Below are positions 21,217 through 56,667 of a stretch of DNA of 64,000 nucleotides, one piece after another. The notes under the pieces were generated by a model. The model did not search any database. It saw only the letters and a list, made by a program, of their open reading frames with translations, and was not told where the DNA came from. Position numbers and translations under genes: made by a program. Origin of the DNA: Paraphysomonas bandaiensis (taxonomy: Eukaryota; Protista; Chrysophyceae); NCBI GenBank assembly GCA_965644295.1, contig CBFFRP010000363.1, positions 434,001 to 498,000 on the forward strand, read 5' to 3'. Numbering within the stretch: position 1 is the stretch's first letter; the number at the start of each line of letters is the position of its first letter.

Positions 21217-23817
21217 CTATAAAGCCCCAACGAAGCACTTGCTATCATGAGGACTGCAATCCAAGTGAAGAATGGAGGGAATAGAGTTATCTTTTACTCG
21301 CCTTTGCTGGATGTGAAAGTGCCCAAATATCATGTGCCACATACGCTCATACTGCCCAGTAAGTGAATGCCCGCCCCATGGATCTTTCGTAGTCGTATTA
21401 CAACATCCTGGAATATCATAGGATCCATTTATACCGGCTAGCATCCTCTCATAGAATGACCTTGGCCACATGTGAATAGCCTTTCGACTAACGGCAAATT
21501 GTGCGGAGGAGTATGTATGGGCATAGTCATAAACCGGCCCCATGAACTTGTAATCCTGGAAAAGATAATTCCAAGTACCGTGCCGGCATGCACCAGGAAC
21601 ACCTGCACACCCACAGCAGGATGCCCACGATGGAACAGTCTTATAATGTACATTGAGGTGAACAAAATGAACAGGGGGGGACTCATGTCGGCATTGCTCG
21701 GACCATGCCAACAGACGATAGAAGAGTGGGAAGTGGATATGGGCATGCGGCGACGTATGTAGAAATATAGTCTGATCAGCCAGTGTGTCGTAGTAATCAA
21801 CAATGTGAGTCAGGTACGCCGTAACTTCCTTGCCGTTATACACTCTGTCAATACAGTGACGCTGGGTAACACGATCACCGAATGCTAACAAAGGTTCGTC
21901 GTCCAAGAGAGTGATAGTCCGTTTTTTCTCAAAGTCACTCTCGCGAAGTCCATTCTCATCTCCGTGAAGCCACTCCTTAGCTTTCGATGCTGGCAAGCAG
22001 AATGGACATTTGTAGTACAACGCTGCAGCTGCTTTCGACGATAGCGTAGAGAGAACATCAAAAAGCCAGTCAAACTCAATCGGTCCTTCTTCGCAACATC
22101 TCGGTAGAACTAACTCTAATTCGAGGTCTGTTCTGCGGTCTCTTGCTAGCGAAGTGTGAAGTAAGTTTTTAGACGGCGGCGGGGAGACAGCTGCAAGCAT
22201 TCGGGAATCAAAATCAGACACATGAGTAGTTCCATTAGGACTTGGATTTGTATACCCGTAATATTTCATTGGATCGTATCCACCCAGCTTACGGGATGTG
22301 TAGGTGGAACGTGTGTTGGGCAAGTGTTTCCCACGAGAGGCTCTAGGACTGATGCGACCATTTTTGGGTAACGTTTTCCCGACACTTGCAGATAATAATC
22401 CAGGTGGTGCACCAATTCGTCCAAAATTTTTGAGGTCATACGGGATGCGATTATCTACCATCGAACAGTTCGAAATGCGAATAGATTGGATATGGTCACC
22501 AACATGGTCCCACAATCGTTGAGGGGCCTTACCATGTATTGTGAATCGAAGAAGCTCGCCATGCCAGTAGGGGTAGTACAACTTAGATAGAGAATATGAA
22601 TCACTGAAGAGCTTACGTACATGATCAAATATTTTTGTCAGATACGCGGAGTCGGTAGTGATGTTGGGCTTAATGAAGTACAATGGCAGATCGGAAAAGA
22701 GGGTACGAGTTCTCTCATCAGTTGTCAAAGAATGAGATAGCAACGGGACTGCACCAAAAGCCATGGCCTCCCATTCGCAATGAGAAAGCATATTCAAATC
22801 ACTCGGAGAGAGAATAAATTTGTACCGATGTAACCGCTGGTAGTACTCAGAGAGCGTGGAGATATGGGACGAGTCACTCTCATTCACATCATGTGGAGAG
22901 ATGTCAGGACTACCCCCATCATAACTGCACGGTAACGAAGGGTACTGTGACATTATACGCTTCATATTTCCCGACTGCCTGGCACAGGAACAGTCAAGAA
23001 GTAGGTCTCGTGTTTGTGAGGATCTATCGAAGTCTGGAGTAGAGAGAGCCTTCGATGCGGCTAGTGTACTGCGAACGCCCACAGGTAGCAATCTTATTCT
23101 CTCCTTCCATTGGGAAGATTCCATGAACTTTCGTAGTGATGGTGTTATCGTGGATGAGCCATCAGATGAAACTGGCGGGCTGCATGGTGGTTGCTGAGTG
23201 TAATACATGTGCACAAAAGGATTCGACGCATGCTCCACACGTTTCATCATGTGTTGCACAGTTGTGAGCGATGTGCACACATATCGTGCATTAATGAGTA
23301 TGAGGCGACGTCCTTGCATAATTCGCATATCTGCTTCGTTCGCTTTATACACAGTAGCAAATTCATAAGATTGGAATTGGCGGGCTCCAATGATACCAGT
23401 TGCTTTCATTAGCACAGCACTGGCGGAGCGCAACAAATTGCTTGTTGACGCCAGCAAGAGATGACTTTCATCACTAGTTGCTATGTTTAATCCTTGAGCA
23501 GCATTTAATGTGTCTATAGCGGTTTCGTTGTTCGATATGCTGTGAGAGGACTGAAAGTGACTGAGACAGCACTTGAGACAACAGGACACATCATCAGCAG
23601 ATAGGGACCCGATAGGTACACGAGACTGAAGACATGTGGAGCTGTATGAGTGATAGTCGCATGATCTGTTCCAGTCACATCGTCCCGTCTTCCCCAATAA
23701 ACAATCAAGAGGAGCGTCCGGCTCAAAGAGGACGCCAGAGCCTGCTGCTCCTGACAACACACCGCAGTGTCCCGCCTGGATCAGTATCAGGACCACTGCG
23801 GACAGGAAGGGGAGCAT
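21217..23817 (-). CDS. Secreted/Golgi protein with exostosin (GT47)-like domain and C-terminal DUF3431 domain, single exon
   Basis: 866-aa ORF; signal peptide MLPFLSAVVLILIQAGHC; YYQRLHRYKFILSP..SHCEWEAMAFGAVP (GT47-like C-lobe); GKEVTAYLTHIVDYYDTLADQTIFLH, AQFAVSRKAI..PRSFYERML, ERMWHMIFG (DUF3431 motifs). Confidence 0.75.
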   Translation of the reverse strand: MLPFLSAVVLILIQAGHCGVLSGAAGSGVLFEPDAPLDCLLGKTGRCDWNRSCDYHSYSSTCLQSRVPIGSLSADDVSCCLKCCLSHFQSSHSISNNETAIDTLNAAQGLNIATSDESHLLLASTSNLLRSASAVLMKATGIIGARQFQSYEFATVYKANEADMRIMQGRRLILINARYVCTSLTTVQHMMKRVEHASNPFVHMYYTQQPPCSPPVSSDGSSTITPSLRKFMESSQWKERIRLLPVGVRSTLAASKALSTPDFDRSSQTRDLLLDCSCARQSGNMKRIMSQYPSLPCSYDGGSPDISPHDVNESDSSHISTLSEYYQRLHRYKFILSPSDLNMLSHCEWEAMAFGAVPLLSHSLTTDERTRTLFSDLPLYFIKPNITTDSAYLTKIFDHVRKLFSDSYSLSKLYYPYWHGELLRFTIHGKAPQRLWDHVGDHIQSIRISNCSMVDNRIPYDLKNFGRIGAPPGLLSASVGKTLPKNGRISPRASRGKHLPNTRSTYTSRKLGGYDPMKYYGYTNPSPNGTTHVSDFDSRMLAAVSPPPSKNLLHTSLARDRRTDLELELVLPRCCEEGPIEFDWLFDVLSTLSSKAAAALYYKCPFCLPASKAKEWLHGDENGLRESDFEKKRTITLLDDEPLLAFGDRVTQRHCIDRVYNGKEVTAYLTHIVDYYDTLADQTIFLHTSPHAHIHFPLFYRLLAWSEQCRHESPPVHFVHLNVHYKTVPSWASCCGCAGVPGACRHGTWNYLFQDYKFMGPVYDYAHTYSSAQFAVSRKAIHMWPRSFYERMLAGINGSYDIPGCCNTTTKDPWGGHSLTGQYERMWHMIFGHFHIQQRRVKDNSIPSILHLDCSPHDSKCFVGAL

Positions 23818-29640: not shown

Positions 29641-29734
29641 GATAGCAAATATAAGGGCGAGATATCTATCAATATCAGCCAACACACTGATACTATAGTC
29701 CACTCCACAGCAGTGTACAGCACTGTACCGGTAT

Positions 29735-30090
29735 ACCTACCTACATACATACATACATACATACATACATACATACATACATACATACATACATACATAC
29801 ATACATACATACATACATACATACATACATACATACATACATACATACATACATACATACATACATACATACATACATACATACATACATACCTACCTAC
29901 CTACCTATACCTACCTACCTACCTACCTACCTACCTACCTACATACATACATACATACATACATACATACATACATACATACATACATACATACATACAT
30001 ACATACATACATACATACATACATACATACATACATACATACATACATACATACATACATACATACATACATACATACATACATACATAC
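29735..30090. repeat. Compound microsatellite (TACA)n-(TACC)n-(TACA)n
   Basis: Directly visible ~355-bp tetranucleotide array with a central cctac block. Confidence 0.98.
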
Positions 30091-30159
30091 AGCAGAGGAT
30101 TTAGATTCGGTGGGTTGTTTGTACTTGGAGAGCATGAGGAGGGTCTCAAAACACACAGG

Positions 30160-31473
30160 ATGCTAGTGAAACCTCTCTCCCAGGTGTTACTAGCACTCTC
30201 ATGGTGTTGGATTTGTAGGGCGAAGCCATGTATTCCAGACGAAGATCAGGTGCCGTCCGCTGCGTGTGTATGTGTGTGCAGTGCGCTGATGAGCTCTGTG
30301 TAGACGTATCTCGCCATAGGCCAGGACTATCACAGCATAGGCAATTACACAGATGCTATCAAGGTGTTGCCTCATGGCGTGATGTCGTACACCTCTCTTC
30401 AGGGGATCTCAGACAGCTCATCGTCTCTGGAGGAGCCTGTGGACTACGGGGCGGGGGTTCAGTGGGCTCAGGGGCTTGCAGAGAGATACCCCACTGCATT
30501 CCTGCAACTTGGACTATGGCTTGTTGACACATGTGATCGAGTTACTGCAAGGGAGTATGACGAAGAAATCGATAAGCTAGCTTCTTTTCTTGTCGGCCTG
30601 AAAATTCCTGTTTTCCTTCGAATTGGATATGAGTTTGACTCCCAAGAAAACCATTATGACGCTCAAGACTATCAATCTGCCTTTCGCTACATTGTCGATC
30701 GATTTAGATATCTCAATGCTGATAACGTGGCCTTTGTGTGGCATGCGTCAGGATTTGCTCCAAGAGATAACTTGTCCGTTGACTCCTGGTTCCCAGGTGA
30801 TGACTATGTCGACTGGTGTGGCCTGTCCTTTTTCCAGCAACCTTACGATTGCCAGGTCTCTGTTAAGTGCATTATGAAAGATGCCGAGCGTCTGGCGAAA
30901 TTCTGTGATAAAGAGGGCATTCCACTAATGATTGCGGAGTCAACTCCATATGGAGGTATCATCGATGAAGCTGATTCATCTCACGGCCCTAATAGAGCAG
31001 GGTTTTACGGGAGTACTTGGAACCGGTGGTTTGTGCCTGTGCTGGACTTTGTGATAAATCACGACGTGAAAATGTGGAGTTACATCAACTGTAATTGGGA
31101 TTCCCAGGTTATGTGGCAAAAGCAGCGCGCGAAACATGAGCATTGGGGTGACAGTCGCATCCAAAAGTTTAAAGGAATAAAAAAACGTTGGGTAAAAGAT
31201 GTTGTGGGTAGTAATAGATTCTCTTGGGTAGTTAATAGAAGTACGGTAATTTCCGGTGAAGACGAATCCGAATCTCCACTGTTTACAGAGAGCCGCCATC
31301 GACGACCCTCTTCTAATGTGTGCAATGAGGTCGTTGTAGATGTGGCACCATACCCCTGGAAAGCTGTTATGATACTTTCTATCAGTGGCGTTGTTCTAGT
31401 TGGTGCTGGAGCGTTGTATTTGACTAAGCTGTACAGAAGAAGAATGTCAAATGAGTATGTGGTGATTGGATAG
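30160..31473 (+). CDS. Glycoside hydrolase family 26, beta-1,3-xylanase-like, with signal peptide and C-terminal TM anchor (exons 30160-30249, 30304-31473)
   Basis: MLVKPLSQVLLALSWCWICRA signal; LAIGQD, VDYGAG, PVFLRIGYEFD (acid/base Glu), NVAFVWHA, WFPGDDYVDWCGLSFF, PLMIAESTP (nucleophile Glu); TM AVMILSISGVVLVGAGALYL followed by YRRR. Confidence 0.85.
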
Positions 31474-39770: not shown

Positions 39771-41979
39771 CTACTCCATCAATGAAACTGCCTTAACACC
39801 AACTGAGAGTGACATATTCTCATCGACACACATTGGCTCAGGAGACCTGCGTGCATCGGGTGCTTTCGATGATATCATACTACCTTTGAATAAGTTTGTT
39901 ACCACTGGCGATAGCAATGAGCTACCCATAGGATGTTCTTTTCTTGGTGTATGTTTCTCTACATATTGTTGTTCAAAATTGACACCATGCCCTTTCGGAA
40001 GTCGAAGTGGCCCGATTGATCCATCTGCTCCAACGTTGTATCTTGTGCTTTCAAAAACACTTCCGTCACTTGTTTGAATTCGACCAGGTGTGCTGTTTTT
40101 CGACCTCATATTATCTGTGGCAGGGGGGGCGAGACTGCGGTTAATATTATGTGCACTTTCCGCTAAATCAACTACATGTTTATCAGCATTGGACGTATTG
40201 GGCACAGGGGGTTCCTCGTCTTCACTAGTAATATTCTTCGGTTTATACAACACCGCTACAACTCCAACACAGACTGCAATGCCGGTTACAACAGCCCCTA
40301 TACCACTGACCATTCCATTTTCGGACTCCTCTTGTGGACTTAGGTTCTCTGGAGTATTTTCATCAAGAGTTCGTGAAGTAGTTTTCCTTTTCTCGCTCGC
40401 ATCGCATGAATCACCCATACAGTTCCCATACAGTTCAGAAAGCGAATCTTCATCAAGGGAATCGTCGATAGAAGCGGTTTGAGAATACGTCGTCCTTTCC
40501 CCTTCCATATCACAAGAACTACCAATACAGTTCCCAAGGTCCTCGGTATGCAAACTTTCAAGGGAATCATCGATAGAAGCGGTTTGAGTATAAGTAGTCC
40601 TTTCCACATCCATATCACAAGAACCACCAATACAGTTACCAAGGTCCTCGATGTACAAGTCTCCATTAAAGGAATCGTCAAAAGTACCCCCACCCTCTCT
40701 TCTATTCATGTCATCTTCAACTATATTTCTATACTCACCGTCTAAATTGTTCGGAACAACATCTATATCATGCAACACACTCTGATGTGAAATGGCAAAG
40801 TCAGACTGAATAGTGCATGCTGGGGGATCGCTACACTCTGGACTAACATCACTTTCTACGGAGTCATGGGTCACGCTTTCATTACTCTCCAAATAATCAG
40901 AATTACTCGCTTCAGTGTCGGGTTCAGATGACTGGACGTTAGCGACATCACTATCCACTAAGTCGATTTCATCAAATTGGTTCGATCCATCATATTCAAT
41001 CGGTGGATTCAATTCCTTGATCTCCTGTTCGACCAACCCACTTTTGGCGGTCATAATTTCTCCTTGTGATTTCTTATGTATAAGCAAAGGTACGTCAAAG
41101 TACAAGCAAAGTGCTAAGATTACCACCAAACCAATAGCAGCCACCCAGATAGAAGTTGATGACGCACTACCTGGTCGTGGTGACTTGCCATGGTCAGTAT
41201 CTTTGCTCTTGCTGCTAGGTGCGACTCCAGAGGCTCTTGCGGCACAATTTGATGCATCAGAGGATGTCTTATGAGGTTCTGCGGATGGTGTGCACTTCAC
41301 TGCCTTCTTCTTTTTCGACTTCTTTCGACTACTACTGATAGAGCTGGGAAGGGCTACATACTTGTGTGAGTGACACCAGTAGAAGCAGTGAATATATAGC
41401 GTGTATACCAACACCAAAAGCAAACAAAATATGATGAAACAGTTGGTACTAGAGTATATAATAAAGCGCTTTCTATTGAAATGAATAAAACATACTAAAC
41501 ATGCAATACAACAAAGGGTATCTACCATGCGTAGAGGACGATGTTCCTTGTGGTATGGAGCCTTCAGCACATTCAACTACACTATTGGTAACATTCTCCT
41601 GACAAGAAGTAGGTGCTTCGATGGGATCTTCAGCTGCAGTATCAGCGTCTATTTCGTTGGTATCATCGGCGCATACAGTATCATTACTAACTTCAACACA
41701 ATCACTGGGTTGCTGCAAATTTTCAGATCCAGCGGTTTCACTGTTATCACCCGAACAAGAAGCCCTTGACTTCCCTAGTGCCTCTAGTCGTATTCGTTCC
41801 TCAGCAGCGTTCAATCTCATCAGAAGTTCTGATTTCTCTCTTTCGATCTCTTCGAATATCGCATCAATCTCAGAGTCGATATTGAGAGAAGTGTCGTAAC
41901 TGCCGCTATAAGAGGACTCATCTATCGGCTGATTTAATATAGAATCCAAGTCATCTAAATCAGACAGCAGGTCAGTCAT
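39771..41979 (-). CDS. Acidic membrane protein of unknown function with two TM segments, ~35-aa Cys-containing repeats and possible degenerate U-box (intron ~41355-41525)
   Basis: ORFs 41473-41988 and 39771-41576 joined by a GT-AG intron; TM IWVAAIGLVVILALCLYF and IGAVVTGIAVCVGVVAVLY; repeat (E)DLGNCIGxSCDM...TTYxQTASIDDSL x2.5. Confidence 0.65.
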
Positions 41980-42507
41980 GAGCTCCAATACGATTATATG
42001 ACAGCTAGATATTATACGTCAATGAACCGCTGCTTGTATCGGGACAGCTGTCATTCCATCGCCTACACGTTCAGTTCATAGTCACGGTAGCACAGGCTTT
42101 CGTCATTATGTTTATCGATACTGTGTGTGACAACAATCCTCTCCTGGGCCCTCATATCAACCATATCACACACACTGCAAGATTACCGTGCAGCACCCTT
42201 CGACCATGCTGTTAGGTACCTCCACTGTACTGCTGTACTATGTACCGATACAGAGTATGCAAGTACAGTATTCTTGTTTGTTCTACAGCAGTACACAGCA
42301 CAGTAGTGTGATGTGGTCATGTGGACATCATCATGCACATCCATACGCATGTGTCGTGACATCACCTCACTCTTACATGCTTCCAGCTACGCGAATAGTT
42401 GAACACTTGACTTACTCTTCCCGCTATGTCAATTATTTCAACTACCTCAGCAGGGGCATATCTGACCACCCTGTATCTGTCCCTGCCCCTGCCCCTGCCC
42501 CTATACT

Positions 42508-44763
42508 ATGACCAGGACATGCACCCCTCTGCTGATAGTGTTCGCCGTTACTCTGGCGGCATCCAGTGCAGTCCATCAGATAGATGAAGAAGGAGGAGGA
42601 GAAGATGATCTTATCAGCACACTGGATGTGGGCGTGGAGTGGTATGAGAGCGCGGGTCACAGGAGTGACTTCGACTACACCTCACTGCAATCAGACGGTT
42701 ACAAAAAAAAATCGAATGCAAAGAGGCACAAAAAGAAGCAACCTGCACCCTGTGAGCCTTCTCCAACCCCAAGTCCAACCGGCCCCTCTCCCCCACTTGA
42801 GGTGACTCCGAAGCCCACCAATAGGAAGAAGAGGAAGCCTACTCCTCCACTTGAGGTGACTCCGAAGCCTACCAATAGGAAGAAGAGGAAGCCTACTCCT
42901 CCACTTGAGGTGACTCCGAAGCCTACCAATAGGAAGAAGAGGAAGCCTACTCCTCCACTTGAGGTGACTCCGAAGCCTACCAATAGGAAGAAGAGGAAGC
43001 CTACTCCTCCACTTGAGGTGACTCCGAAGCCTACCAATAGGAAGAAGAGGAAGCCTACTCCTCCACTTGAGGTGACTCCGAAGCCTACCAATAGGAAGAA
43101 GAGGAAGCCTACTCCTCCACTTGAGGTGACTCCGAAGCCCACCAATAGGAAGAAGAGGAAGCCTACTCCTCCACTTGAGGTGACTCCGAAGCCTACCAAT
43201 AGGAAGAAGAGGAAGCCTACTCCTCCACTTGAGGTGACTCCGAAGCCTACCAATAGGAAGAAGAGGAAGCCTACTCCTCCACTTGAGGTGACTCCGAAGC
43301 CTACCAATAGGAAGAAGAGGAAGCCTACTCCTCCACTTGAGGTGACTCCGAAGCCTACCAATAGGAAGAAGAGGAAGCCTACTCCTCCACTTGAGGTGAC
43401 TCCGAAGCCTACCAATAGGAAGAAGAGGAAGCCTACTCCTCCACTTGAGGTGACTCCGAAGCCTACCAATAGGAAGAAGAGGAAGCCTACTCCTCCACTT
43501 GAGGTGACTCCGAAGCCCACCAATAGGAAGAAGAGGAAGCCTACTCCTCCACTTGAGGTGACTCCGAAGCCTACCAATAGGAAGAAGAGGAAGCCTACTC
43601 CTCCACTTGAGGTGACTCCGAAGCCTACCAATAGGAAGAAGAGGAAGCCTACTCCTCCACTTGAGGTGACTCCGAAGCCTACCAATAGGAAGAAGAGGAA
43701 GCCTACTCCTCCACTTGAGGTGACTCCGAAGCCTACCAATAGGAAGAAGAGGAAGCCTACTCCTCCACTTGAGGTGACTCCGAAGCCTACCAATAGGAAG
43801 AAGAGGAAGCCTACTCCTCCACTTGAGGTGACTCCGAAGCCTACCAATAGGAAGAAGAGGAAGCCTACTCCTCCACTTGAGGTGACTCCGAAGCCTACCA
43901 ATAGGAAGAAGAGGAAGCCTACTCCTCCACTTGAGGTGACTCCGAAGCCTACCAATAGGAAGAAGAGGAAGCCTACTCCTCCACTTGAGGTGACTCCGAA
44001 GCCTACCAATAGGAAGAAGAGGAAGCCTACTCCTCCACTTGAGGTGACTCCGAAGCCTACCAATAGGAAGAAGAGGAAGCCTACTCCTCCACTTGAGGTG
44101 ACTCCGAAGCCTACCAATAGGAAGAAGAGGAAGCCTACTCCTCCACTTGAGGTGACTCCGAAGCCTACCAATAGGAAGAAGAGGAAGCCTACTCCTCCAC
44201 TTGAGGTGACTCCGAAGCCTACCAATAGGAAGAAGAGGAAGCCTACTCCTCCACTTGAGGTGACTCCGAAGCCTACCAATAGGAAGAAGAGGAAGCCTAC
44301 TCCTCCACTTGAGGTGACTCCGAAGCCTACCAATAGGAAGAAGAGGAAGCCTACTCCTCCACTTGAGGTGACTCCGAAGCCTACCAATAGGAAGAAGAGG
44401 AAGCCTACTCCTCCACTTGAGGTGACTCCGAAGCCTACCAATAGGAAGAAGAGGAAGCCTACTCCTCCACTTGAGGTGACTCCGAAGCCTACCAATAGGA
44501 AGAAGAGGAAGCCTACTCCTCCACTTGAGGTGACTCCGAAGCCTACCAATAGGAAGAAGAGGAAGCCTACTCCTCCACTTGAGGTGACTCCGAAGCCTAC
44601 CAATAGGAAGAAGAGGAAGCCTACTCCTCCACTTGAGGTGACTCCGGAACCATCGAGGCTAGAACCTTGTGATATTTTGCCTACCCCGAGACCGTCTAGC
44701 CCTTCGTTGGAGGTGACTCCTAAACCTACTTCTGAGAAGAAGAAGCGTTATAAGGATACGTAG
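42508..44763 (+). CDS. Secreted repeat polyprotein: signal peptide, acidic pro-region, 34 x (PTPPLEVTPKPTNRKKRK)
   Basis: 751-aa single-exon ORF; signal MTRTCTPLLIVFAVTLAASSA; acidic DEEGGGEDD; unique non-repeat termini are in frame with the array; visible array variants are synonymous (cct/ccc). Confidence 0.85.
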   Translation: MTRTCTPLLIVFAVTLAASSAVHQIDEEGGGEDDLISTLDVGVEWYESAGHRSDFDYTSLQSDGYKKKSNAKRHKKKQPAPCEPSPTPSPTGPSPPLEVTPKPTNRKKRKPTPPLEVTPKPTNRKKRKPTPPLEVTPKPTNRKKRKPTPPLEVTPKPTNRKKRKPTPPLEVTPKPTNRKKRKPTPPLEVTPKPTNRKKRKPTPPLEVTPKPTNRKKRKPTPPLEVTPKPTNRKKRKPTPPLEVTPKPTNRKKRKPTPPLEVTPKPTNRKKRKPTPPLEVTPKPTNRKKRKPTPPLEVTPKPTNRKKRKPTPPLEVTPKPTNRKKRKPTPPLEVTPKPTNRKKRKPTPPLEVTPKPTNRKKRKPTPPLEVTPKPTNRKKRKPTPPLEVTPKPTNRKKRKPTPPLEVTPKPTNRKKRKPTPPLEVTPKPTNRKKRKPTPPLEVTPKPTNRKKRKPTPPLEVTPKPTNRKKRKPTPPLEVTPKPTNRKKRKPTPPLEVTPKPTNRKKRKPTPPLEVTPKPTNRKKRKPTPPLEVTPKPTNRKKRKPTPPLEVTPKPTNRKKRKPTPPLEVTPKPTNRKKRKPTPPLEVTPKPTNRKKRKPTPPLEVTPKPTNRKKRKPTPPLEVTPKPTNRKKRKPTPPLEVTPKPTNRKKRKPTPPLEVTPKPTNRKKRKPTPPLEVTPKPTNRKKRKPTPPLEVTPKPTNRKKRKPTPPLEVTPEPSRLEPCDILPTPRPSSPSLEVTPKPTSEKKKRYKDT
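42790..44647 (+). repeat. 54-bp coding minisatellite, ~34 copies
   Basis: Unit cctactcctccacttgaggtgactccgaagcctaccaataggaagaagaggaag; first agg-aag-aag-agg at 42823 and last at 44605 (33 x 54 bp apart). Confidence 0.97.
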
Positions 44764-45714
44764 TTGCCACGAGTTTTTCGTTTGCTTAGTTTCTTGTTTT
44801 TATATTTCGTTGATTTGTGATTTCTCTGTTTTGCGTGATTGCTTTTATCAGTTTTTGAAGTGTGAGTACTATGCATTGCTGGTTGTCAATGTGTAGTTCA
44901 TACAGTTATGCCATTCTCTATAATTTTGATTTTATTTTATTAATTACAATATCTTTTACTCAGTTGTTTATATATTGTGGTCCTCCCATTGTCATGATCT
45001 GTCTGTCATAGACTATTCACAATGTCGTACTATATGATATATTGCAATTTTATCTGTAGTAACTAGCCGTATAATGTCCAGCGTGTTGACTAATTCAACG
45101 TGTCTGTTGAAATATATGCAATACCTTTTCAAGATTTGATATTACTATTGTGATTAGAACGACTGTGGTTAGGACAAGATAATTTTCAACAACTCAGACT
45201 AAATTCTAATGTTTTTGGTTGAGTAAAAAAAGGACTTGGTGTTTAGAGTAGCATGGACGCTACTGATATACTATTTTATAATTTTACTATAATTTTATTT
45301 AGCATCAGTGGACAATACGTAGTCAGCCATGGAAGCGCCCAAGGGTGCTACGATTACGAGGAGTACGCAGACGACCCGAGAGTGACTGGACCACCGCACA
45401 CCGAACCCCACGAATCATACCCACAGGAACATATCACCGTCCCGCAAGAAACCCTCAGAACTTCGACAACGACGCCGTCTCCGGCAACTTTATCTGTCCC
45501 CGAGGCCCAAACGGTGCACTGCGACAGCGCTACATTCCAACTCTCCATCCACCTTTCAGCCCACACACCTAGCACTCGGTACACTCAGGACCTTACTACT
45601 ACAGAACCCTGTACCTTCACAAAGCCCAGTGGAGTCTCATCCCAAGGGGAGACCCCCTGATCACACGCGCCAGTGAGTCCTGAGACACACGATCACAGCG
45701 AATCTCACAATCAA

Positions 45715-46049: not shown

Positions 46050-47540
46050 ATAATATATAATATATACAACACAACTTCGGTTGAGAGTGATTTCTTGCAA
46101 TGACCGTATTTATTAAATTCCAGGATATAAACTTCACTAGTCAGCACCACGACTCACAAAGTTTCACACTTCACACTCCACTGTGTGCTCGGATTTGTAA
46201 ATGCTTTCACTGTTTTTACCTCGAAGGCCTCCCAGGATATTGTATTTTTTATTGGTGAAGCCACCGCTACATTCTATCGTAATATATTGTTTCCTAGTCT
46301 ACATCGGTATGCCATTATCGGTATATCCTTCATGAAAAACTATGTAATAATACGTTCACCCTGTCCTGAATTGTGAGCGAAGTGATAGCCTACGCTACTT
46401 CTTCTTATTCTTGCACCTTAATAGTCTCCTAAACCACCAGCATTTGTCATGCCCAATTTCGCTACATTTCAGTCACAAGTTATTTCAAGCATTATGACGA
46501 GGTACATACAGAATTATTGCAAGTGGAAAGTCAATAGTACGAAATAATGAACCACAGGCCAAAGTGTGTATAGATACGAAAGGTTTGGTATAAACGCAAG
46601 TTTAGGAAATTTAACAACCAAAGACACTCAAACACTAAATGAAATTAATGCACGTGAAACAATTCAGCTCCAACTAGACATATTAGAGGCAGTAAGATTT
46701 AATCTATTCTCCACATTGCAAAGTGATGTACCAGTATTACTGCATTATTGCCAATGATAATTACTTTTTTCAGATGGTTGTACAGTGTCGTGCAGTGTAG
46801 AACGCAAACTGTAAATTACATAATCAGTCCAGTGTTGCATATGAGTGGATATGCTACAACAGTAAGTGATATGCGATACACTTGGATCCATCTCTTACCC
46901 TCACAGCACCATCATCTTAAATACATGTAACCTCAGTCGAATATACAGCACACACCAGATCATGACGAGATGATGCAGTATGAACTCGTTCCAAAGTTAT
47001 CATAAGCATGATCACCACCAGATCGGTTAGCAGCAGTGGCATATGCTTGACAGGCCCACATAACCCACTCAAACACATTCATGCAATGAAACAGCATACT
47101 CAGGAGCGCATTAGTGGTGAACGCTTCTGTTGCAGTTGTATGGCTATTCAGGATGCTCCATGCGGTCTATGCATGTATATGTGTGGGGGGGTTCTGTATG
47201 TATGTGTGTGTATCTGCTGCGGTATTATTCATATGATCATACGAGTCTCTCTCCTCATGAGGAGCACACACCACTATACACCACTATGACCACACACTGT
47301 TGATAGTCCTCACTCGTGTCTGTGAGTAGAGGCAGCAGCAGAGCCTCTGAATCATGTACTCATATATGCATATATCCACATCACATTCACTTCGAAGTCA
47401 CTCAGAGGTATACACTCATATACGTACACGTATACCTTTGTATTCCATATACACAGTATACAGAGAATACGTTGATTCACAGTTGTAGTAAAAAGTTTCA
47501 CATATGCACTCATTGTATGTATATGTATATGTATGTACAG

Positions 47541-48220
47541 TATGTATGTATGTATGTATGTATGTATGTATGTATGTATGTATGTATGTATGTATGTATG
47601 TATGTATGTATGTATGTATGTATGTATGTATGTATGTATGTATGTATGTATGTATGTATGTATGTATGTATGTATGTATGTATGTATGTATGTATGTATG
47701 TATGTATGTATGTATGTATGTATGTATGTATGTATGTATGTATGTATGTATGTATGTATGTATGTATGTATGTATGTATGTATGTATGTATGTATGTATG
47801 TATGTATGTATGTATGTATGTATGTATGTATGTATGTATGTATGTATGTATGTATGTATGTATGTATGTATGTATGTATGTATGTATGTATGTATGTATG
47901 TATGTATGTATGTATGTATGTATGTATGTATGTATGTATGTATGTATGTATGTATGTATGCATGTATGTATGTATGTATGTATGTATGTATGTATGTATG
48001 TATGTATGTATGTATGTATGTATGTATGTATGTATGTATGTATGTATGTATGTATGTATGTATGTATGTATGTATGTATGTATGTATGTATGTATGTATG
48101 TATGTATGTATGTATGTATGTATGTATGTATGTATGTATGTATGTATGTATGTATGTATGTATGTATGTATGTATGTATGTATGTATGTATGTATGTATG
48201 TATGTATGTATGTATGTATG
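47541..48220. repeat. (TATG)n microsatellite, ~680 bp, one CATG variant at 47961
   Basis: Directly visible. Confidence 0.99.
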
Positions 48221-48338
48221 TGTGTAGGGGCAGTGGGTGTCCATGTACAGCAGTAGGAGTGTGTGTGGTATGGTCATGAGGTTTCTGTACTGTGAATGGA
48301 AGTGTGACGGTGTTTTATTATTGTGTTGTGTGTAAGTT

Positions 48339-52327: not shown

Positions 52328-55300
52328 TTACCCAACACGTTGGGCCACTGTCTCTCGCGCTTCATGTCGTTCTTTTCTTCCTCCGAGCAAACACCAGAGA
52401 TTCTCCCTAGAGAAAAACAAGCCGTCGCTTTGATCACTTTCTCCGTTTCTTCTGCTTGCCGTGTCAGAGAGATCGCATTTGTCGCTTGACAGGACCTCGG
52501 TGAGAGTCCCGTTTTTCTGACGAAGCGCAAGTAGTCGCTCTTCACATGTGTTTTTCCCGTATAATATAACGCATTTGACACTTCTGGTCTGCCCTATTCT
52601 ATGAACGCGGCTTATTACTTGCGCTTCCTCAGTGGCATTGTGGCAGGGTTCCAACATGTACAGCACGCGTGCCGCACACAGTGTCAGACCCGTGGCACAG
52701 ACTCCTGTTGTTAGTATCAGAACTGAGCACTCGGTATCGTGGTTAAACTTTCTCAGACACTGCTGATTTATTGCCCCCGAGTTATCTTTTCTCATCCGTA
52801 CACATTGAACCTCATTACTCTTTAAGGCGTATTCAACGATTTCTGCCGACTCGTTATAGTGAGTGTATATCACGAACTTAGCGAAGCGATCATCTCTACG
52901 TACATCCTCAATGTCTGATAGTAATGCCGTAACACGGGCAGAAAAAAAATACTTTGGGCGCTGAAAGACGTTGAGGGCATTGCATGATATCGATGGAAAG
53001 TCAGTGTTCCTGTAGGATGTTATGTTGTACTGAGGTATATACGAATTTAGCTCCGCTGTGGGAATTGCCGTGGCTTCACACGACAGATGTGGGATCAAGA
53101 ATTCAATATCACTACTCCCAGTTGTTGAAATTATTTCCTTAGGTCTATGAGAAGCAGTCATTTCGCTGCATGAGGACGTCGCATTCATCGTGGCCTCAGG
53201 GTAGAGGTAGCTATTGCTCTCACATTCAGCGGTTGTAACCAAACTATCACATACACCATTTATTCCGTTTTGATTCTCACTTGAACTACAGGGTTCTTCA
53301 AATGGCTCTTCAATATTGTCAACTTTTACTTCCATGAGATCCTTCGCCGCTGCATAGCATTCAATGCGCGTATTACATAAGTTTTATACAATAAAGTATG
53401 CTGAATACCTATTCTTCGTCTACAGACCGGACACTTGGCACTGAATTCACCCTCTCTCTCGACCACGTCTACAATACACTCGTAGCAGTAGGCATGTACG
53501 CAAGTAGTAACCGTTGGCCGGGTCGCCTCCATCAGACAGAGAGGACATGATACTGCCTGTCCGGCCATCAGACTGTACAGAATGGAGAAACCTCCCTCGT
53601 AAAGTTGAGAGGCATCTTTACCACAAAGTTCAGGTCGACGCAAAACCTGAGAATGTGAAATAAGTAAATCGACAAAGGGCTGTTTTCTCTTCGCATGGTC
53701 GTGTTTGTAAATATCTACTCTATGCTGTGCATCTAGTGACCATCGAGTCTGAACTGATACCTCCCCGAGCAGATCCTCAGCCATTTTACTGTCCTCCACC
53801 TGTTCTCGCCAAGAGTGATGAGGGTCACTATACCGGTCATCAACGAGATCTACTGTCATCTCCGCGTCATCTCGATCCGCCCAACGTACACGCACCACGT
53901 CTCCAATCACCAAGTTTTTATGCAAGCACAGTTTTCTCATATATTTTTCATTACTATCTTTGACCGCAGACGGACTATCCTCGACAATTTTTCTGGGGTT
54001 CGCATACAAGCTTAAGGTGTTAGAATTCCTGTTCACACTAACTTGATAAGGCAGCTTCATCCAACTCATCGGCTGTGGCAAACCCAAGTGTTCTACTCGG
54101 CTGGTGAGTTCTGACAGCGGTAGCGTATTCAAGTCCTCCCGTTGTGCCTGCTCAGCTGCATGCGCCGCAACAGAAGCATGAGTACGATTACTCTGCCAAT
54201 TCAGACCACCTGAAGAGCCTACCCCAACGCTCTGAACAACCTGTAGGATATCTTCCGCACTCATCAGTGGAATATCTGTTATACGTGATACTAATGCATT
54301 GACTCGATAACACATTAACATTCGCTTGAGGTGATCGAGATTTCTCAAACTGACGGTGGAGGTGTGAGTTAGGCAGCGGCTCAACAAACCTACCAAGCCT
54401 CGAATTTGGGCAATGTGAATTGCACCATATCCTCTATATGAGTTTCTAAATTCAGTTGTACCTCCCATATATGGGGCCCATTGTTCAATAGCATCAGCCG
54501 CAAAGCATTCAATGTAACGGTAGGCAAAGAGTTCATCTGGTGATTCTTCTAGAAGAAATGGTCGCCATTCAATAGTTCTGGAAGGCATTCGTACAAGCGG
54601 AGAGTTATCACTAACGTAACGCTGACTCTTCGTGTGGCGCATCATAACAACATCAAGTAGCTCGTAGAGCAGACGAAGAGATGATTCGTTCTTTTTCGCA
54701 TAGGGGCCAGCAATACACTTGCCCCAAAACCCATCCTTATTATTGGCTAGAGAAAAAGGCCATATTTTAAGAAAGTTTAGCTCCCCATGTAAATCTGCAA
54801 TTGAAGAGCAGAGGGGAGTCCCACTGACCATCCATCGCCGCTGCGACACAAGATTCGCGCACATCGATGCTATTTGATTAGTAGCCACTTTAATATATTG
54901 GCATTCGTCCAGCACTACTCGGTACCACTCTATATTTCGGTACAGTTTTCCGCATCTCGGCCGCTTCAATTTATCGTATGTTGTCAAAACTATATCTATA
55001 TCATTCAATTGGCTCTCAAAATTCACATGAACAGCCACCTTTTCCTGTCCTTCCATATATAAACGATATATCGTTCCCCTAAATATCTTTCCCGGCGTGC
55101 ACCACTCCAGCCCGCGTACTTCCACATGATCACAATCTTGACCAAATACTCCCCACTCTAACCGACGAACGTTCTCAGTATATACGCTCACCGAATCCCC
55201 TTCATCATTGGAAAAATATATTCCTCTGACATCCCCTGCAGGCACCAATTCATAATCCAAATTCCGTTCAGCCATACTGATAACAGTTATTTCTCCCTTC

Positions 55301-56667
55301 TGCAATGTCGTACCACAAGTTGCTCGTGTGTTGATCTCATCCCACCACTGTTGTGCAAGCTGACAGGGAACTACAATCAGCGTGGCCCGGGATACATGCA
55401 GTGGAGGTTTGCGTTTGTCGCTTGCATCGTTAGGAGTGAAGGTCGATTGTGGAGGGTTGATTCGTGAAGCGGGGTTAGCAAGTATGAGAGATATGACCTC
55501 CACTGTTTTACCTACAAATGAATTATTATACATTTAATCGAAAGCAGCATAAAACAGAAGATAAAACAAAGTGCATACCAAGTCCCATCTCTTCGCACAA
55601 CAGCCCCCCTTTAACCAGAGGTGGCTTATCGAACCGGAACTCCCCGGCCAAAGGAAAGTAATACATAGGCGGACCCCCATCATTGAATGTCCACTCCTCC
55701 CAAAACCTTCCGTTTAATCCCCTTTCGTCCAACTCCTATGCAACACATATTAGCAGTAGAAACAAGCCCACATAAACTGACTTGATCTAGCATCCACTGG
55801 CAAGTAGACTTCTGAAAATCATACAGGGGTACCCTTAACCCTCTAGGCTCGCAGTAAGATCCATCCCCATAGCCTACACTCTCTACATGCCGAAGCAAGC
55901 CCTGAAGTGAGAACCTGTACTGTCGAAGCTGCTGTAACTCTGCATCTGTCTTTGTGAACATGCGGGGCTGAGTAGCCTTGGGAGTGCAATACACTCTCGT
56001 GCACGGGGCGTCCTGAACATAAATGTAATCAAAGTGCAAATACTACACACCGATAATATACCCTGATGTTGTCTACAACATTTTTAATAGCTGTATCTGA
56101 AATCAACTCAAAGACAAGTCGCGAGAAATACACATGCACTTTGACTACAAGAACTCCATCCGATGACGTGTATATATGCTGCGTAAACAACCTGGACAAT
56201 GGTTGCTTCCATGGGGATGATATTGGAGATTGCAAGGCCACTAAGCTTTCAAGAATATCACGATCACCTGGAGCCATCACAACATGATGCTGTCTTCGGA
56301 GCTTGTCCAATCGAGATATCGGAATCTGATTCACTGAAGGAAACTCGCCAGCATCGTCGCAACTCCAATATTTGTTGTAAGTTTCAGTGGGAATGAAACT
56401 AGAAGTGATATCCTTCATGTCGCTCTCCTGCACACGGCTCAAACGGAGCTCTACATGACCCATATAGCGGGCCGACAGAGAGGACCCCCTCGCCGCCTCC
56501 TTCGCTGCCTTCGCAGATCCCCAGTGAGGCGGTAGAGTCTCCTCTGTGAATGTATTTAGGTTTATCACTAGCGGCAGAGGGTCACAGAGGATGCTCTGGC
56601 TTATATCTTTTTCGGTCCTCCGCACACTCCTGCGTGTAACACTCCTGGCGGAGGATTTGCGCTTCAT
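52328..56667 (-). CDS. SNF2-family helicase with RING finger (RAD5/HLTF/SHPRH-like)
   Basis: LYDFQK, GGLLCEEMGLG|KTVEVISLIL (Walker A), TLIVVP..QQWWDEI, IVLTTYD, WYRVVLDECQYIK, RWMVSGTP, RING CPLC..CVHAYCYECI..CPVC, HelicaseC KFVIYT..GLTLCAARVLYMLEP..QVISRVHRIGQTR; GT-AG introns join the ORFs. Confidence 0.92.

Follow-up and report, generated by a model that had tools for sequence, protein, structure and literature searches.

The repeat gene and its product

This report concerns one gene within a stretch of 64,000 nucleotides (hereafter the window), positions 434,001 to 498,000 of the forward strand of contig CBFFRP010000363.1 in GenBank assembly GCA_965644295.1. The gene is a complete, intronless coding sequence of 751 amino acids plus stop (42508–44763, plus strand), called as an open reading frame (ORF) with an ATG start and built for the most part from a single short tandem repeat. 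A first-pass annotation, made from the letters alone, had read it as a leader, an acidic stretch and 34 basic repeats, and this layout was confirmed by the ORF call, by Tandem Repeats Finder and by a unit-by-unit reading of the array. The computed product has a mass of 85.5 kDa, a net charge of +168 and a pI of 11.5, and it consists of 25% Pro, 20% Lys, 15% Thr and 10% Arg. The whole protein carries 34 R-x-[KR]-R, 36 KR and 36 KxxK motifs, and neither an R-x-L motif nor an N-glycosylation sequon occurs in its 751 residues. The only cysteines are residue 5, which lies in the leader, and residues 82 and 721, one on either side of the array.

The array lies at 42788–44646 on the plus strand and makes up 80% of the protein. 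Tandem Repeats Finder reported it as the single array in the ORF, with a period of 54 bp, 34.4 copies, 99% matches, no indels and a score of 3690; it comprises 34 units of an 18-residue repeat, each with a net charge of +5, and the start of a degenerate 35th. Each unit contains five Pro, three Thr (17%), four Lys, two Arg and one Glu, has neither Ser nor Tyr (all four Tyr of the protein lie in the flanks), and devotes 28% of its length to a five-residue basic cluster. The peptide PTPPLEVTPKPTNRKKRK, in the register of the first-pass annotation, is exact in 33 units, and the remaining one begins with S. The earlier count of 34 copies was borne out. In DNA, 31 of them do not differ from one another, and the other three carry silent changes: units 6 and 13 have one CCT>CCC change each, and the first unit (unit 0), which follows a Ser and not a Thr, has two. 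A collapse of short reads could not yield silent variants fixed at units 0, 6 and 13, which argues that the array is real. In the low-coverage DNA run X11, the repeat has a depth of 42 against about 4.6 for single-copy contigs, a rough ratio that corresponds to roughly nine units and hints that the copy number of the array differs between isolates.

Two possible signals of coding and selection were considered and set aside. Silent-only variation among the units was rejected, because only two kinds of change occur and one open antisense frame shares the wobble positions. A codon-adaptation test for the coding strand was also rejected, since codon bias is weak genome-wide and out-of-frame controls score almost like the true frames.

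Only in the plus frame were an ATG, a leader and unique in-frame extensions observed; the extensions comprise 94 codons ahead of the array and 47 behind its last full unit. Residues 1–21 (42508–42570, plus strand) form a signal-peptide-like leader with Arg3, a hydrophobic core at residues 6–17 and SSA before the likely cut, and the hydropathy of this segment shows, on inspection, the n-h-c order expected of secretory signal peptides. An acidic stretch comes next in the charge profile (residues 22–65, net -11; 42571–42702, plus strand), followed by a linker that is first Lys-rich and then Pro/Ser/Thr-rich (residues 66–94, net +7; 42703–42789, plus strand) and contains Cys82 at 42751–42753. Behind the array, the 35th unit is degenerate and has lost its basic cluster (LEVTPEPSR...). 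It belongs to the C-terminal 47 residues (44620–44760, plus strand), which also hold Cys721 (44668–44670), one further LEVTPKPT followed by EKKKR, and a hydrophilic end; neither a transmembrane (TM) segment nor a GPI-like tail was found in them.

In stramenopile plastid presequences a Phe is expected after the cut site. No Phe follows the putative cut here and the next segment is acidic, which argues against a plastid-type presequence.

Transcription, origin and relatives of the gene

Contigs of four runs (X8, X14, X16 and X11) were placed on 41000–42850, that is, on the 5' flank as far as the first unit. The X8 contig, 3647 nt in length, lacks the 172-nt intron of the upstream gene (41354–41525, GT..AG on the minus strand) and is therefore RNA-derived. 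It extends unbroken across the intergenic region and all of the unique N-terminal coding sequence, reaching 42846 within repeat 1, and it is collinear with the genome over 41526–42846, so no splice is seen in the 5' part of the gene. The contigs of the neighbour in X14 and X16 (poly(A) metatranscriptome) stop at 42148 and 42142, respectively, and the mRNA of the upstream gene thus probably does not normally include the array. These positions, which lie in the region shared with the divergent upstream gene (41989–42507, no strand assigned), are probably the 5' end of that gene. The repeat itself appears as a collapsed 84-nt unitig in all four runs, three of RNA type and one of DNA, and its depths in the RNA-type runs are 927, 42 and 6, against 336, 14 and 5 for the neighbour's contigs. 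A lack of transcription had been named beforehand as fatal to the first-pass annotation; RNA-derived contigs cover both the unique 5' part and the repeat.

The protein of the upstream gene (39771–41988, minus strand) is acidic and has one TM-like segment and no Pfam family; a 105-bp repeat (40453–40650) lies inside its coding region. Its GT..AG intron is removed in the RNA contigs of two runs.

The 5' end of the coding sequence could be related to a known family. With HMMER and a blade profile made from paralogs in the same genome, residues 18–53 (42559–42666, plus strand) were recognized as a degenerate single FG-GAP-like propeller blade, which the acidic stretch overlaps. The calcium-binding loop DxDGDGDxD of the blade has become DEEGGGEDD, and WYENxG has become WYESAG. 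The N-terminal 113 residues were also searched with HMMER against 1.84 billion representatives; the five matches obtained (E 5e-5 to 5e-4) are all multi-blade FG-GAP_3 proteins, each aligned repeatedly by query residues ~4–64, and no orthologue was among them. FG-GAP_3 genes of the same genome align blade by blade to residues 13–62, and a profile of 23 of these blades gives 12.2 bits for the real N-terminus and at most 4.6 over 2000 shuffles. Pfam made no FG-GAP_3 (PF13517) call on the N-terminus, even at E 10.

The FG-GAP_3 paralogs of this genome consist of a signal peptide, seven blades, a Pro/Thr-rich linker, a Cys-rich domain and a TM anchor. The repeat gene is like them in that residues 18–53 align to one blade and a Pro/Thr-rich stretch comes after it, but it has one degenerate blade with the calcium loop lost, and no propeller, Cys-rich domain or TM anchor. 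As a result, of the signal peptide and short acidic pro-region that had been proposed, the layout stands and the identity of the second part does not: the acidic segment appears to be an FG-GAP blade relic, neither a dedicated propeptide nor a functional member of the family. The 5' end of the gene would descend from a fragment of this family, the rest being an expanded minisatellite. The relic, the layout of the paralogs and the absence of relatives together make the gene look like a young chimera with an expanded coding minisatellite.

Loci of the FG-GAP_3 surface family (L021–L030) include G000:C149:254885-255793, C358:87042-87950 and C68:103947-104921. One of them, L025 (C66:364407-364727), is a short open fragment of about two blades and is possibly a gene fragment like the seed of the repeat gene. 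A TGTA-type array (read as CMYV...) lies just upstream of another, L022 (G000:C358:85689-88868), on contig C358.

Further searches uncovered no relatives. A word search with the whole protein returned a sole match, P0001, a spurious Pro/Thr/Gln-rich bacterial-looking protein, and one with the C-terminal 136 residues returned no match. Exact look-up of the repeat-gene ORF and four neighbouring ORFs found none of them in the protein collection, and a degenerate DNA pattern for TPKPTNRKKRKPT had no match in JGI metagenome contigs, a collection that may omit records of this genome. Searches of the genome itself with the N-terminus and the C-terminus matched this locus alone; neither the leader nor the repeat occurs there a second time, and the gene has no paralog. 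Pfam assigned no family to the whole protein or to the N-terminus. The neighbours found in the ESM Atlas are all repeat glycoproteins or wall proteins, with weak scores (0.75–0.76). The gene is lineage- or species-restricted.

Proteases, silica and known repeat proteins

The first-pass annotation had further proposed that the repeats are peptides delimited by convertase sites. Furin and Kex2 belong to the S8B subtilases and possess a P-domain. Kexin-type enzymes carry the motifs DDG, HGT[RK]CAG and GTSASAP, and S8A-type enzymes carry DTG, HGTH[CV]AG and GTSMAxP. In the genome searched (62.5 Mb, 669 contigs), the P_proprotein domain PF01483 had 0 matches. PF00082 (S8) had 50 matches, and 32 loci were read in six frames; their catalytic motifs are S8A-type, S1P-like or none, and the kexin-type motifs were found at none of the 32. 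The assembly may, however, be incomplete. The proposal thus holds for the sites (34 R-x-[KR]-R and 36 KR) and is not supported for the enzyme, and since no furin- or Kex2-type enzyme was seen, an intact polymer is likelier than a precursor of 34 peptides. Moreover, cleavage at RKKR with trimming of the basic residues would leave a core with a net charge of about +1. The convertase and silaffin halves of the proposal are therefore in conflict, because such processing removes the very cationic cluster that a silaffin-like role needs.

Among the subtilases, L038 (G000:C297:1038097-1038873) is site-1-protease-like, with HGTFVAGVIA and GTSVANP. More than 30 S8A loci occur in the genome, and three of them are identical copies that lie in tandem within a 2746-aa open frame on C137.

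The layout of the product, a signal peptide and at least three repeats with dibasic or R-x-K/R-R sites between them, is of KEP type. Fungal KEPs, yeast alpha-factor and Ustilago Rep1 also have a signal peptide and many near-identical units with dibasic sites between (PMC6339444, PMC7329392). They need kexin and have short KR or LxKR sites, whereas five-residue clusters are present here and no kexin-type protease was found at the loci read. The uncleaved extensin- or mucin-like wall protein, which the first-pass annotation had mentioned as its alternative, fits the evidence better than the convertase reading. Plant basic Pro-rich wall proteins and Thr/hydroxyproline (Hyp)-rich glycoproteins, such as the maize Thr-rich HRGP with TPKPT-type motifs, offer a comparison. 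Members of the plant extensin/PRP superfamily share a signal peptide and tandem Pro/Thr/Lys-rich repeats, and are extended, basic, structural and not cut into peptides. The protein described here differs from them in having no SPPPP, no SPPP in the repeat unit, no Tyr cross-link motif and a far higher charge density; there is no homology, and the host belongs to a different kingdom.

The host is a silica-scaled marine chrysophyte flagellate, probably Paraphysomonas. About seven loci match the silicon-transporter (SIT) family, most of them intronless ORFs of 500–560 aa, and at five or more of these loci one and the same half of the Pfam model is matched by each half of the protein. This "Group 2" SIT pattern has been described for Paraphysomonas and Ochromonas (Marron et al. 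2016, PMC5100055). No photosystem reaction-centre gene was found in the genome, a result on which, together with the SIT pattern, the assignment to Paraphysomonas partly rests. About 20 loci have a prolyl-4-hydroxylase-type 2OG-Fe(II) domain, which indicates a capacity for prolyl hydroxylation only. Long-chain polyamines occur in the silica of Synura, and a paper of 2025 leaves open whether they bind to silaffin-like proteins (PMC12206195). In the literature, no silica-associated protein was found reported for chrysophyte or synurophyte scales.

Silaffins are recognized by an ER signal peptide, an acidic then basic repetitive layout, KxxK, a Ser-rich context and RxL (PMC4557024). Judged in this way, the likeness proposed earlier is partial. 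The signal peptide (by inspection), the acidic-then-basic layout, the KxxK clusters (36, with a net charge of +5 per unit) and the silicifying host with its SIT loci speak for it; the Lys clusters have no Ser-rich (phosphoserine) context and the repeat ends no RxL. Sil1p of Cylindrotheca fusiformis, together with tpSil3 and the cingulins, shares the signal peptide, the acidic N-terminal part, the basic repetitive C-terminal part and KxxK (PMC4557024). The repeats of Sil1p, however, are Ser-rich, diverged among its seven copies and cut at RRIL/RRNL (RxL) ends, and its host is a diatom, whereas the present repeats have no Ser and no RxL, are Pro/Thr-rich, form 34 identical units in a chrysophyte host and have no sequence homology to it. 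To our knowledge silaffins are not conserved in sequence, so the missing homology is neutral for this question. LPCL1 of the haptophyte Prymnesium neolepis, which has Pro/Lys-rich regions and was recovered from silica scales (PMC4742977), may be a closer functional analogue than a silaffin. Its core, however, is a lipocalin domain in which Cys are conserved, whereas no folded domain and no detectable homology are present here.

Other features of the window were noted as well. A 135-aa ORF with a signal-peptide-like hydrophobic start and a Pro/Thr-rich continuation lies directly after the repeat gene (45253–45660, plus strand) and could represent exon 1 of another gene for a secreted protein. 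There are very long tetranucleotide microsatellites, (TGTA)178 at 47514–48226 and (ATAC)89 at 29733–30091, of the kind also met upstream of L022. Two abutting ORFs at 52328–55533 (minus strand) together encode SNF2, RING finger and helicase C-terminal domains of RAD5/HLTF type, and probably belong to a single gene that a short intron or a frameshift interrupts at ~53330. An 866-aa ORF at 21217–23817 (minus strand) has DUF3431 and a weak RXYLT1-like domain and is glycosyltransferase-like, and the ORF at 30364–31473 (plus strand) has a weak GH26 (mannanase-like) match.

Possible roles of the polycationic protein

We tentatively favour, at somewhat less than even confidence, a real, transcribed and lineage-restricted gene whose product is an intact secreted polycationic Pro/Thr-rich polymer, one that would glue or coat polyanions on the cell surface or within the scale layer. 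We infer secretion, the lack of cleavage, glycosylation and the binding of polyanions from the features described above. The product would enter the secretory pathway by its N-terminal signal peptide. The chain would most likely stay essentially intact as a disordered, extended, Pro/Thr-rich polymer of 83 kDa, probably O-glycosylated on Thr/Hyp, and would present about 34 Arg/Lys clusters, each with a charge of +5 and spaced at intervals of 18 residues. Such a polymer might act as an electrostatic glue for polyanions, which may be polysilicic acid or silica scales, an acidic polysaccharide coat, or the surfaces of bacterial prey. With one Cys on either side of the array, the molecules could be linked end to end by disulfides. 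The gene itself would be young, its leader region coming from one blade of an FG-GAP surface protein and its array being a recently expanded or homogenised coding minisatellite.

Several points weigh against this secreted polymer. The depth of the repeat unitig divided by 34 is about one tenth of that of the neighbour-gene contig in X8 and X14, which means modest expression, and the contigs are strandless and do not give the transcribed strand. There are nine ATGs on the plus strand between 42148 and 42507; in a long 5' UTR they would interfere with translation. Three of the six reading frames are open across the repeat unit, so an open frame within the array is not evidence of coding. The leader was judged by eye, the basic clusters might yet be cut by other proteases (yapsin-like, metacaspase, cathepsins), and there is no orthologue to show selection. 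The protein is known here from DNA and RNA contigs.

Some of these points would equally suit a neutral ORF, in which a fragment of an FG-GAP blade came to lie beside a fresh minisatellite and is open and transcribed by chance, possibly as antisense or read-through, with no selected function. The open frames and upstream ATGs, the 99% identity of the units in DNA, the lack of relatives in searches and of a paralogue in the genome, the destroyed calcium-binding loop and the roughly nine units suggested for another isolate by X11 (by which the length may be unconstrained) are all in keeping with it. The ATG, the well-formed signal-peptide-like leader, the unique in-frame extensions of 94 and 47 codons and the presence of the repeat unitig in poly(A) RNA are not, and we regard this explanation as unlikely. 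A silaffin analogue is less probable and, in our judgement, plainly unlikely; here the protein, whole or cut by a non-kexin protease, would enter the silica deposition vesicle, where its KxxK clusters, possibly modified with polyamines, would nucleate or pattern the silica of scales. Nothing ties its expression to silicon, composition alone is weak evidence because precipitation of silica in vitro is a property of every polycation, protein searches found no homologues in other silicifiers, and a repeat without Ser offers no phosphoserine partner to the Lys clusters of a protein that also has no RxL. What suggests it nonetheless is a host with about seven SIT loci, a signal peptide, acidic-then-basic layout and 36 KxxK as in Sil1p (PMC4557024), the Pro/Lys-rich LPCL1 in haptophyte silica scales (PMC4742977) and the polyamines of Synura silica (PMC12206195).

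The remaining explanations are less probable still. A polyprotein cut at RKKR(K) by a non-kexin protease would free about 34 Pro/Thr-rich peptides of 13–14 residues, serving as a signal or as antimicrobials on ingested bacteria. Apidaecin-type precursors, for example, contain multiple copies of Pro-rich antimicrobial peptides. The perfectly regular spacing of 34 R-x-K/R-R and 36 KR sites and the identity of the units, as in multi-copy peptide precursors, agree with such a product, but it appears quite improbable when no P-domain was found in the genome and no kexin-type motifs at the S8 loci read, when Pro occupies P2' of the cleavage site and the freed core is nearly neutral, and when neither a conserved family nor an orthologue with constant sites and varying cores exists. 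Very improbable is a nuclear or nucleolar basic protein, in which the hydrophobic N-terminus is no signal peptide and the 34 RKKRK clusters are nuclear localization signals (NLS) or nucleic-acid-binding motifs. RKKRK fits the classical monopartite NLS pattern, and TPKP resembles the S/TPKK-type DNA-binding motifs; the secretory n-h-c layout of the N-terminus, the Pro/Thr-rich repeats with flanking Cys that are typical of extracellular proteins, and the secreted or membrane-bound nature of the ancestral FG-GAP family speak against it.

For the secreted polymer, a role in silica scales is a candidate link, so far unsupported, and an orphan, low-complexity, apparently secreted repeat protein is a common kind of gene. 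There is a small chance that the product is the first scale matrix protein of a chrysophyte, a polycationic repeat polymer whose evenly spaced basic clusters template or glue silica, analogous but unrelated to diatom silaffins and haptophyte LPCL1 and recently born from a surface-receptor gene fragment and a minisatellite. Its value as a candidate comes from the fact that no chrysophyte or synurophyte scale protein was found reported and that the polyamine-binding question in Synura is open (PMC12206195). In a scale-forming flagellate, an apparently secreted protein with 34 cationic clusters at even spacing is a cheap and concrete candidate for a silica-scale protein. The locus may also illustrate the birth of a new gene for a secreted protein, with a probable relic FG-GAP blade giving the 5' end and a 54-bp minisatellite giving 80% of the protein.

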